A stretch of 64,000 bases of DNA from Parasitella parasitica NRRL 2501. Taxonomy: Eukaryota > Fungi > Mucoromycota. Below the pieces are notes generated by a model. That model was not told the DNA's origin, ran no database searches, and was given only the letters and a program-made list of their open reading frames with translations. The position numbers and the translations under genes are program-made. Where the stretch lies: NCBI GenBank assembly GCA_025201805.1, contig MU619286.1, positions 112,678-176,677 of the forward strand, in the 5' to 3' direction. Below are positions 3,172-6,036 of this stretch, piece by piece (the stretch's first letter is position 1; the number at the start of each line of letters is the position of its first letter).

Positions 3172-4768
3172 ATGCAAATAATAAAACCACTTTTCGCTGT
3201 AGCTGTTGCTTCCACGGTTTCAGCATTGAATTTAAGAAGCGGCATTGCCATTGTCCACAGAAACTTGTCGATTCCTGCCAACGTCAATTTTGCTGCTAGT
3301 TATTTAGCACCTTTTGCACCTGAAGATGCTGTTGAGCAACCTTTCAACTTGATTGATGACCATGAAGATATGATAATTAACCATCAAGGCGCTTTTGTTT
3401 CCTTAAGAAAAAGAGGTGATGATTGTCAAAAATACCACAAGGCTGTTTCAGGTGATAATTGTTACACATTGGCACTTAAATACAGTGTCGCTGAAAAGAG
3501 CCTTCATGCTTGGAATGAGCAAATCAACCCTGGATGTACCAATCTATACATTGGAAAATCGTATTGCGTCAGAAAGGAAGACGAAATGGTTTTGGAAACT
3601 GAATGCGCCAAAACTTATGTTGGTATGAACACATGTTATGGCGACTATCTTGTATGATTTTACTAACTAACGGAAACAATAGTCCAGAGCGTTGATACTT
3701 GCATCTCTGTCTCAAAAGCCCATGGAATTGAATTGGATACGTTTTATAACATGAACCCCTCAATCAACAAAGGCTCTTGTGGTAATTTGTTAACTGGTGG
3801 TTCTTACTGTGTCAAAGAATCAATCAAGAGCGTTGCCGATACCATTGTCAATAAAGCCGCGAAAAAGCTTGATATTAGCACTTCCAGGCGTCGTAATACC
3901 AAAAAGAAATCTCGTTCTACAAGAACTGCTTCAAATCGTCCTACCAAACATTCTCAGAAATCAAAGAAAGCTAATGTTACTACTACTGCTACTACTACTG
4001 CTACTACTACTGCTACTACTACTACAACAACTACTACTACTGTTATTACTACTACCAATAGACGGACCACCACCACTACTCATCGAGCTACTACCACCAA
4101 AAAAGAAAAAGAGGCAAAGGCTACTAGCACATCTGAAAAGAAGAATAGCCGCAAACTGCTCCAAAAAGGATCTGATTTGACTTATTACTGGATTGCTCAC
4201 CCAGATGATTATGATCATGATGGTAAATCTGTTACTGTCAGGACCTGTGATGGCGATAGTCTTGGTACTGTCTCTGAGGAATACGCGGATGCGCTGGTCA
4301 TGGAGGGCACTGGCATTGTTGGCAACAAGGTCATTAATCTTGGTGGCTGTTCTTGTAATAATTATAAATGTTTTATGGAGGTTGACAAAAAGGAGGATCC
4401 CTATGGGCTAACCTCCTTTGGTAGCCCTCTTCGTCCGTTCATAACAGTGGCTGCTAATGATATCAAGAGGAATACAAAGATCTTTGTTCCTTCCATTGTT
4501 GGATGGGAAATTCCTGGCAGTTCCAAGAAACACAATGGCTGCTTACTTGTTGATGGTAAGGATATTTTAATTGCTTAATTTAACAATGTAGCACAGCACT
4601 AACCTTCTTGGATGTGATGCTATAGATCGCAGTTGGAGTTTTGATAGTAACCACATTGACTTTTATGTTTATCGTGAAAAGAATTATCGTTCCTTAAATG
4701 GTGAACACAAGGTCAGCTCTATCGACGTCTATGAGGGTGGTGATTGTAATCTACTCAATTACATCTAA
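3172..4768 (+). CDS. Secreted protein: signal peptide, 2x Cys-containing LysM (CBM50), Thr/Lys-rich linker, C-terminal 3D (MltA-like double-psi beta-barrel) domain
   Basis: Exons 3172-3622, 3683-4555, 4626-4768. LysM1 CQKYHKAVSGDNC..WNEQINPGCTNLYIGKSYCV; LysM2 CAKTYVVQSVDTC..MNPSINKGSCGNLLTGGSYCV. C-domain TYYW..MEGTG..CF..PYG..LRPFITVAAND..HNGCLLVDDRS..HIDFYV. Confidence 0.85.
3977..4098 (+). repeat. (ACT)n-type trinucleotide repeat encoding a poly-Thr linker
   Basis: ACTACTACTGCTACTACT... in frame within the LysM gene. Confidence 0.9.
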
Positions 4769-4789: not shown

Positions 4790-6036
4790 TTAAGCATATA
4801 TAGTTTCCCCAAATGATGTTGTGATAAAACGGCTTGATCCATCTTCTATTTTGCTATATAATTCAGACAGTTGCTGCGTAGGCGATAAATAAGGCTCGTT
4901 GGATTTCATAAATGTGCCCCAGTGTATCCCGATAGATATTCTGGGTGATCCTAAATCAAAGTGTGCCTGGATTGCCTCTTTGGGATTCATGTAATTCGAT
5001 TTGAACATGGTTTCTGGTTCAAACGTGCCAATGGGCAAGGCTGCAAAAGTAAACGGGGAATAGATGTCTCGTATAGATTGGAATAATTCAGGAACATAGC
5101 CTGTGTCACCACTGCACAAATTGTCAGCTATTATCATTGTGTTATCAATAAACCACATTCATGTCTCACCAAAAAAGAATCCTCTCACTCTGACTCTTGA
5201 TTACAAAACTGCACCACAAAGACTCTTCCTTGTTACTTGTATGCATGGAGGGTACACTGGCTATTACAAGATCTGAACGTCCCTTATGGTGCATTTCTTG
5301 CCACCAGTCTAGTTCTATAACATTGTCGACTCCCTTTTTATTGAACCACTGCCTTAAGCCCAAGGGTATATACCAAGTGGCATTGTTTCCTAGTTGCTCC
5401 ACAGCCTTTTCATCCAAATGGTCGAAATGCTGATGTGATACGAGTACAATATCTATCCTGCCAATTTCACTCAGTGGACAGGGTGGCGGTCTGAGACGTT
5501 TAGAGTGCTCAAAAACAGGATCTGTCAATATCTTGAGTCCTTCCATAGTAATCAGACACGTAGACTGGCCGAGCCAAGTCAGGCTTGTGCTGTTGCAGTT
5601 GAATTCGGGCTTTACGATGGGCAATGCATCGACGAGTTCCTTTAAAAAAAAATTGTTAGTGTTTATATGTGCTACAATCGCTACAACCTACTTGTTCGAT
5701 TTTTGGTATTTGATTGTTGTTATTGATACCGAACCAGTAAAGCAACGAATTCAAGAGAGAGGTACTAGGCTGCCTCCACTCACTGAATGGATTCACATAG
5801 TGGTTTTCTATCTTCAGGCTGGCAAACTTGTCTTGCTTTCTCTTTAAACGTCTGCGTTTATGTACAACCTGCTGTCGAATGGCTTCTTTGAGGTCGGATT
5901 TGTGTGATGCCTGTAGTGAATAATATAACATAGCACTTGCCCCTACTGTTGCAATGAGCGTAGGAATGGTATATGGGTGGTCAAACGGTATAGGAAAGTT
6001 AACAAAGGATAATCGTTTATTGTTTGATACAGGCAT
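4790..6036 (-). CDS. NAPEPLD: NAPE-phospholipase D-like metallo-beta-lactamase
   Basis: YVNPFSEW, TWLGQSTC, LTDPVF, SHQHFDHLD (HxHxDH), ELDWW, GDTGY, LPIGTFEP, IHWGTF across 3 exons. Confidence 0.9.

Follow-up and report, generated by a model that had tools for sequence, protein, structure and literature searches.

What role might a fungus have for a protein that joins two LysM modules to a domain resembling bacterial peptidoglycan-cleaving enzymes? The question is raised by a three-exon gene of Parasitella parasitica NRRL 2501 (Mucoromycota), located on the plus strand at positions 3172-4768 of the stretch analysed here (64,000 nucleotides, referred to as the window; GenBank assembly GCA_025201805.1, contig MU619286.1, positions 112,678 to 176,677). 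Direct reading and translation of the three pieces gave a product of approximately 488 amino acids (aa). An earlier note on this DNA, made from the letters alone, had assigned its C-terminal part to the 3D/MltA domains, and this identity is upheld by a fold match, a profile bridge through bacterial proteins and the retention of active-site residues, namely the catalytic Asp and the Thr/Tyr pair. Judged from the modelled fold of a relative together with these features, the domain is a 3D/MltA-type double-psi beta-barrel. We consider it probable that the protein is a secreted, LysM-anchored mini-MltA transglycosylase from an old multigene family of early fungi, with chitin or chitosan as its most likely substrate.

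Fold, profile links and active site of the C-terminal domain

The modelled structure is that of a relative comprising the domain only (P0026, 178 aa), computed from an alignment of 41 sequences. This relative shares 69% identity with the exon-2 part of the window domain and 94% with a paralogue on contig C37 of the same genome. The AlphaFold model reached a predicted local distance difference test value (pLDDT) of 90.5 and a predicted template modelling score (pTM) of 0.83. Its top Foldseek matches were MltA from four species, a Caulobacter homologue, LtgG and YuiC, with E values of about 1e-3 to 2e-2. In VIA-align, chains of the MltA family occupied ranks 1-6 (Z 8.1-10.3, with 154-159 of the 178 residues aligned), YuiC scored Z 8.0 over 88 residues (root-mean-square deviation 2.3), and Pa4485 and two phage-type baseplate proteins scored Z 7.1-7.8. 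Expansins (about 6.5), loosenin, kiwellin, barwin and cerato-platanins lay at Z 5.6-6.7 with approximately 80-87 residues aligned. It is this aligned extent, about 155 versus about 85 residues, that distinguishes MltA from generic double-psi barrels. The fungal domain of about 175 residues is shorter than the MltA span of about 250 residues aligned to it, and the Pfam MltA model (PF03562, inserted domain B) found no match in the window exons or in full-length orthologues. The fungal domain is a mini-MltA without the large inserted domain of MltA.

Standard profiles did not recover this identity. Pfam scans of the three exons and of full-length orthologues returned LysM only, with no match of the exons to the 3D model (PF06725), and PDB sequence searches with a single exon piece and two family profiles matched no MltA or 3D chain. 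On standard profile evidence the domain identity would fail, because the Pfam and PDB sequence searches yield LysM or nothing; at the Pfam threshold there is formally no 3D match, and the link is shown by custom profiles and structure. A domain-only alignment of both fungal subfamilies (A3) was searched against 1.84 billion cluster representatives, of which 1217 were matched at E <= 1e-3 and 606 at E <= 1e-10. Five proteins (the bacterial P0337, P0363 and P0331, together with P0316 and P0350) were matched by this fungal profile at about 1e-23 to 1e-28, with several bacterial matches spanning the whole domain, and the same five pass PF06725 at 28-45 bits (41.3 for P0337, 44.7 for P0363 and 34.0 for P0331). 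Among the longer relatives, 14/53 match Pfam 3D at E <= 1e-4.

Comparison of alignments by hhalign linked the fungal with the bacterial alignment at a probability of 100% (E 3.4e-41, 168 columns) and the bacterial alignment with E. coli MltA at a probability of 93% (E 2.9e-7). The direct comparison of the fungal profile with E. coli MltA was weak (E 0.087); the sequence link is nevertheless convincing because the bacterial intermediates bridge both. This bridge points to homology of the fungal domain with genuine 3D/MltA domains, as a divergent branch. An entire eukaryotic branch of the family escapes the Pfam 3D model.

Residues were mapped from the profile alignments and are numbered as in P0026. 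D143 of the H-I-D motif (window codon 4658-4660) aligns exactly with the catalytic D308 of MltA, and D132, whose codon is split by intron 2 (4555/4626), aligns exactly with D297; the equivalents of both are nearly invariant in the fungal family. Invariant across the 41 relatives are T8, Y10, E48-G51, N99, D100 and H124-C127, and little or no variation is seen, both in these relatives and in A3, at the catalytic Asp, the second Asp, Thr and Tyr. The first-strand sequence F-T-Y-Y-W matches F-T99-G-Y101-Y of MltA as a motif and an aligned range rather than as a residue-level superposition, and M-E-G-T-G corresponds to Q-G-S-G of MltA. D308 of MltA (D162 of YuiC) is the catalytic carboxylate, oriented by T99 (T91), while D297 (D151) binds the N-acetyl nitrogen of the -2 sugar and the Tyr at the position of Y101 (Y93) figures in an alternative mechanism (PMC4499186). 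The same Asp, Thr and Tyr are named for LtgG (PMC6667503). MltA-type catalysis would be the most economical explanation of a site conserved in this way.

Gene structure and likeness to bacterial enzymes

The features of the gene and the copies of the family in this genome are compiled in the table below. The split codons at introns 1 and 2 encode Val and Asp, respectively, and both junctions match those of the annotated Parasitella parasitica orthologue P0001 (...TYV-V-QSVD... and ...LLVD-D-RSWSF...), whose C-terminus is 96% identical to exon 3. The additional exon that the earlier note had proposed in order to complete the C-terminal domain is confirmed by this agreement, and each of the motifs quoted there (TYYW, MEGTG, AAND, HNGC, VDD and HIDF) is present in the sequence. 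Many metagenomic gene calls of relatives run on past ...LLVDG at the point of intron 2, so that the position of this intron is probably shared; the paralogue on C37 has no intron there.

The N-terminus resembles a signal peptide, being hydrophobic and ending in V-S-A, and is followed by an acidic stretch that runs up to LRKR, of which KR is retained in the consensus of the 41 relatives. The protein is probably secreted and freed from its pro-region by Kex2-type cleavage. Exon 1 alone was matched by Pfam LysM at residues 90-129 (22.4 bits, cut-off 20.9). The orthologues P0001 and P0004 reached 34.7 and 41.1 bits with two LysM stretches each, and the family profile matched LysM chains in the PDB, including Ecp6, LytE and the LysM of a fern chitinase. 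The layout described in the earlier note, with a signal peptide-like N-terminus, LRKR, two Cys-bearing LysMs and a Thr/Lys linker, is present in full and conserved in the 41 relatives; the length and sequence of the linker differ among them.

Table. Features of the LysM-3D gene (window positions) and copies of the family in the genome of P. parasitica NRRL 2501
Feature	Position	Strand	Description
Exon 1	3172..3622	+	Signal peptide (~3172-3225), acidic pro-region, LRKR, LysM 1, start of LysM 2; from translation
Intron 1	3623..3682	+	60 nt, phase 1; gtatga...tactaac...tag; GT..AG ends, tactaac branch site
Exon 2	3683..4555	+	Rest of LysM 2, linker, first part of 3D/MltA-like domain
Intron 2	4556..4625	+	70 nt, phase 1; gtaagg...cactaac...tag; splits codon of the Asp aligned to MltA D297
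Exon 3	4626..4768	+	Remaining 3D domain with H-I-D and last Cys; TAA at 4766-4768
Dibasic LRKR	3403..3414	+	Kex2-type site just before first Cys of LysM 1; putative cleavage
LysM 1	3424..3567	+	Cys85 to Cys132, four Cys; from translation and Pfam
LysM 2	3604..3810	+	Four Cys; split by intron 1; judged through orthologues
Linker	3814..4170	+	Low-complexity Lys/Ser/Thr with poly-Thr run; from translation
3D/MltA-like domain, exon-2 part	4171..4555	+	TYYW 4180-4191, MEGTG 4300-4314, Cys-rich hairpin, AAND 4450-4461, HNGC...VD to 4554
Family copy: window gene	3172-4768	+	LysM-type
Family copy: second LysM-type gene	contig C37		Domain without intron
Family copies: three genes	contig C25		Signal peptide and domain only, ~230 aa
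Family copies: two further loci	this genome		Long Ser/Thr/Lys regions

A convergent neighbour lies on the minus strand at window positions 4790-5624 and has a metallo-beta-lactamase fold (Pfam Lactamase_B_2, 60 and 28 bits). It consists of two open reading frame pieces, presumably split by an intron, and a gap of about 20 nt separates its 3' end from the stop codon of the LysM-3D gene.

In its overall plan the fungal protein resembles YocH/SpsA of Bacillus subtilis, stationary-phase survival proteins with two LysM and an Sps/3D domain: both combine a signal peptide, two LysM and a C-terminal minimal MltA-type (3D) domain without an inserted domain (PMC1084345). YocH, however, is bacterial, acts on peptidoglycan and passes Pfam 3D, whereas the fungal protein has Cys-bearing LysMs, a pro-region ending in KR, an extended Thr/Lys linker and a catalytic module of greater length (T-Y-Y-W...E-G-T-G...Cys hairpin), in which the first D is replaced by N-D and D-x-G-G-x-I by D-D-x-S-W-S-F. 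The fusion to LysM in the fungal protein looks independent of that in YocH, since its closest relatives outside Mucoromycotina (Rhizophagus and Myxococcota) are devoid of LysM.

YuiC of B. subtilis (PDB 4WJT/4WLI/4WLK), a minimal MltA, has a pared-down double-psi barrel with the same Thr/Tyr/Asp set as the fungal domain, but forms a domain-swapped dimer without a Cys-rich hairpin. The best structural matches are E. coli MltA and its homologues (GH102; PDB 2AE0, 2PI8, 2PNW, 7ESJ, 2G6G and 3CZB; LtgG, 6QK4), and MltA shares F-T-x-Y, (Q/E)-G-(S/T)-G and H-(F/I)-D with the fungal domain. In contrast to MltA, the fungal protein is the eukaryotic product of an intron-containing gene, lacks the inserted domain B and is no lipoprotein. 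Bacterial lipoproteins with T-Y-Y-W, E-G-T-G and 3D features (e.g., P0337 of Polyangiaceae) can be aligned with the fungal domain over its full length, including the conserved Cys; they differ in retaining the canonical A-V-D and D-V-G-G-x-I, in passing Pfam 3D and in lying on the opposite side of the tree split described below. The paralogues of Mucorales named '3D domain-containing protein', at least three copies of which are found on C25, have the same domain at about 40% identity, but lack LysM, linker and Cys hairpin.

Distribution and origin of the family

The profile search of this genome yielded seven matching places, corresponding to at least six gene copies. The three genes on C25 include a tandem pair on the minus strand (L003, 130-825 and 1441-2220), and the third (L005, 1378-2067) is located about 33 kb away. 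A word search with the C-terminal domain returned 105 relatives, all from Mucorales, Umbelopsis or metagenomes. Taxon labels were available for a minority of the 150 matches listed. The named relatives belong to Mucorales, Umbelopsis, Bifiguratus, Endogone, Jimgerdemannia and Rhizophagus, to Neoconidiobolus, Basidiobolus and Tieghemiomyces, and to the chytrids Lobulomyces, Clydaea and Hyaloraphidium. The family spans three fungal phyla, Mucoromycota, Zoopagomycota and Chytridiomycota.

By sequence comparison, the closest identified relatives outside fungi are bacterial 3D-domain lipoproteins, and those that could be placed are Myxococcota. P0337 is encoded between a Ser/Thr kinase and a Mur ligase, and an 82%-identical copy is present in one genome of Polyangiaceae, a family that the NCBI taxonomy places in Myxococcota. 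P0361 and P0359 are encoded on contigs with bacterial-looking gene neighbourhoods. Profile A3 matches 21/201 sampled genomes of the phylum of this Polyangiaceae genome, read as Myxococcota. Even the nearest bacterial sequences share no more than about 30-35% identity with the fungal domain. A metagenomic protein of 1212 aa (P0264) combines a calcineurin-like phosphoesterase, a 3D-like domain and teneurin-type EGF repeats with a weak GH18 match.

An unrooted IQ-TREE phylogeny was calculated from 35 fungal and 27 confirmed bacterial rows, with the window domain represented by its exon-2 part; the bacteria that were placed taxonomically were all Myxococcota, and three bacterial rows came from unplaced metagenome contigs. 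All 35 fungal rows lie on one side and the 27 bacterial rows on the other side of a single branch, with an ultrafast bootstrap value (UFboot) of 85 and a Shimodaira-Hasegawa-like approximate likelihood ratio (SH-aLRT) of 97. The LysM-fused proteins form one clade (100/99) neighboured by LysM-less Rhizophagus (94/82), and within this clade the window gene groups with Parasitella and Mucor. The LysM fusion would have arisen within Mucoromycotina. A FastTree calculation with 142 rows, including unlabelled metagenomic sequences, recovered the same main split with a support of 92; at the base of the fungal side it placed two sequences that resemble lipoproteins and are probably bacterial, one of which (P0279) is found on a contig with a GC content of 66-71%. 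Such a basal position would be in keeping with a nesting of the fungi inside the bacterial diversity.

The earlier note had suggested a horizontally acquired domain that has since been fitted with introns and a fungal LysM module. An ancient transfer into early fungi is tenable, but a recent gain is contradicted by a multigene family in three phyla and by the tree. In favour of a late transfer, in which this fungus or genus alone would have received a bacterial gene and introns and LysM would have been added afterwards, it can be argued that the wider 3D superfamily is widespread among bacteria (6/14 bacterial control genomes were matched by the Pfam model) and that full-length bacterial relatives exist. 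However, orthologues and paralogues occur throughout Mucorales and in Umbelopsis, the domain is present in Glomeromycotina, Endogonales, Zoopagomycota and chytrids, fungal and bacterial rows are separated by one branch, and the nearest bacterial sequences share merely the identity given above. On this distribution and the tree we rejected such a transfer, which is excluded for practical purposes. Since a multigene family spans early-diverging fungal phyla and separates from bacteria at one branch, any transfer was ancient and not specific to this gene. An ancient acquisition from bacteria by early fungi is the only tenable transfer, its direction being suggested by the abundance of the superfamily in bacteria; the family would then have expanded. 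A survey that covered interkingdom transfers in 44 early-diverging fungi makes no mention of this family.

Substrate and biological role

In the proposed mechanism, the two fungal-type LysM modules would hold the C-terminal mini-MltA module on a polymer containing N-acetylglucosamine (GlcNAc), and this module would cut beta-1,4 glycan strands through an intramolecular transglycosylation that leaves 1,6-anhydro ends. The likeliest substrate would be chitin or partly deacetylated chitin of fungal walls, either in the remodelling of the own wall or in an action on other fungi; bacterial peptidoglycan would be the main alternative. Our ranking puts wall remodelling directed at chitin ahead of anti-bacterial action, with a non-catalytic role in third place.

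Chitin is at least as likely a substrate as peptidoglycan because of fusions to CE4, a chitinase neighbour and the cleavage of chitopentaose by YuiC. A CE4 polysaccharide-deacetylase domain is fused to a 3D-like domain in four relatives. On a bacterial-looking metagenome contig (L011, 2012-4921), a CE4-3D-CBM2 protein of 969 aa adjoins a GH19 chitinase, a longer copy of this contig carries CBM2 and CBM5/12 proteins beside the CE4-3D-CBM2 gene, and the gene upstream on L011 partially matches the family profile (39.8 bits). From its gene content, L011 looks like a chitin-processing locus that uses the 3D-like domain. YuiC turned penta-GlcNAc into a 1,6-anhydro disaccharide, which shows that cleavage of a chitin oligomer lies within the capacity of a 3D enzyme; chitohexaose is bound by MltA (PMC4499186). 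Further clues to chitin are that the LysM modules are of the Cys-bearing fungal kind and that the family is multi-copy in fungi with chitin/chitosan walls. One of the four CE4 fusions is encoded on a eukaryotic contig (L041, 6001-12890; GCA_027600675.1) by an intron-rich gene for 1644 aa, the neighbours of which include a 7tm_3/ANF-receptor gene.

A number of observations weigh against a chitin-cleaving transglycosylase. The earlier note had regarded all three Asp positions as kept; the second and third do align exactly, but the first canonical Asp, D261 of MltA, aligns with N99 of AAND, and the invariant D100 follows one position later. Likewise, the Gly-rich loop D-x-G-G-x-I is replaced by D-D-x-S/G-W-S-F in the fungal family. 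In YuiC and MltA this loop contacts the -1 sugar. Because the first Asp and the -1-sugar loop are changed, the activity or specificity of the fungal domain may differ or be lost. PF06725 reached at best 13.0-14.0 bits (E 0.06-0.13), in the right place, on two close relatives and remained below its cut-off of 23.8; a search of the whole 32.8-Mb genome with this model gave no match at E <= 1. The fold evidence comes from the model of P0026 and not from the window's own product. LysM binds peptidoglycan besides chitin, and bacterial relatives occur in peptidoglycan contexts, adjoining a Mur ligase or fused to a weakly matching VanY.

These last points lead to the strongest competing explanation, a secreted lytic transglycosylase that would act against bacteria or control endosymbionts, with LysM bound to bacterial peptidoglycan and cleavage as in MltA, YocH and YuiC. 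All characterised relatives are peptidoglycan enzymes (PMC4499186, PMC6667503, PMC1084345), the plan of two LysM and Sps/3D defines the SpsA/YocH group of Firmicutes (PMC1084345), the catalytic residues are retained, and the Mur ligase and VanY associations just mentioned are found in some bacterial members of the subfamily. On the other hand, the remodelled loop at the -1 sugar, the fungal kind of LysM modules, and the CE4 fusions and the GH19/CBM5_12 neighbourhood, which point to chitin, speak against it. Moreover, a housekeeping role in the wall fits better than a specialised weapon because the family is old, multi-copy and present in fungi of very different lifestyles. On balance we regard an anti-bacterial enzyme as rather unlikely, although it ranks ahead of a non-catalytic protein.

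Such a protein would bind or loosen walls with its barrel as a carbohydrate-binding surface, similar to expansins, loosenins and cerato-platanins. The barrel is indeed shared by expansins, loosenin, cerato-platanins and kiwellin at the Z scores given above, and both the sub-threshold Pfam 3D score and the altered first Asp and G-G loop are consistent with such a role. Yet MltA-family chains align over nearly twice the length of expansin-type barrels, and the conservation of the catalytic Asp, second Asp, Thr and Tyr would be unexpected for a pure binder, which is therefore disfavoured. Given this aligned extent and these residues, the expansin-like reading was ranked low and appears improbable. 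The chitin-directed transglycosylase is the interpretation that we prefer.

In the databases, UniRef already names the LysM-less paralogues '3D domain-containing protein', and clusters of a language-model atlas agree; one Joint Genome Institute (JGI) fragment of the LysM subfamily also bears the name '3D domain-containing', but this subfamily is otherwise labelled only 'LysM domain-containing' or 'CBM50'. Our literature search found no study characterising a fungal 3D/MltA-like protein. The fungal family forms a genuine, divergent branch of eukaryotic proteins within a known enzyme superfamily.

To our knowledge, the 3D/MltA enzymes characterised so far all come from bacteria or phages and have peptidoglycan as their substrate. 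In fungi with chitin/chitosan walls, their catalytic core is likewise conserved, present in several copies and probably secreted, and some members join it to LysM, others to domains of the chitin-deacetylase type. As a tentative and far-reaching hypothesis, which we hold to be possible rather than likely, early-diverging fungi may possess a eukaryotic family of lytic transglycosylases whose attack on chitin, or on chitin that is partly deacetylated, is non-hydrolytic and leaves 1,6-anhydro-GlcNAc ends; its different members would be tethered by LysM or coupled to CE4 chitin deacetylases, would help to remodel chitin/chitosan walls and would descend from an ancient bacterial peptidoglycan enzyme. 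The Mucorales include agents of mucormycosis. Activity of the family on chitin would mean a non-hydrolytic mode of chitin cutting, as yet undescribed in fungal wall biology, whereas activity on peptidoglycan would point to a widespread anti-bacterial enzyme of fungi.

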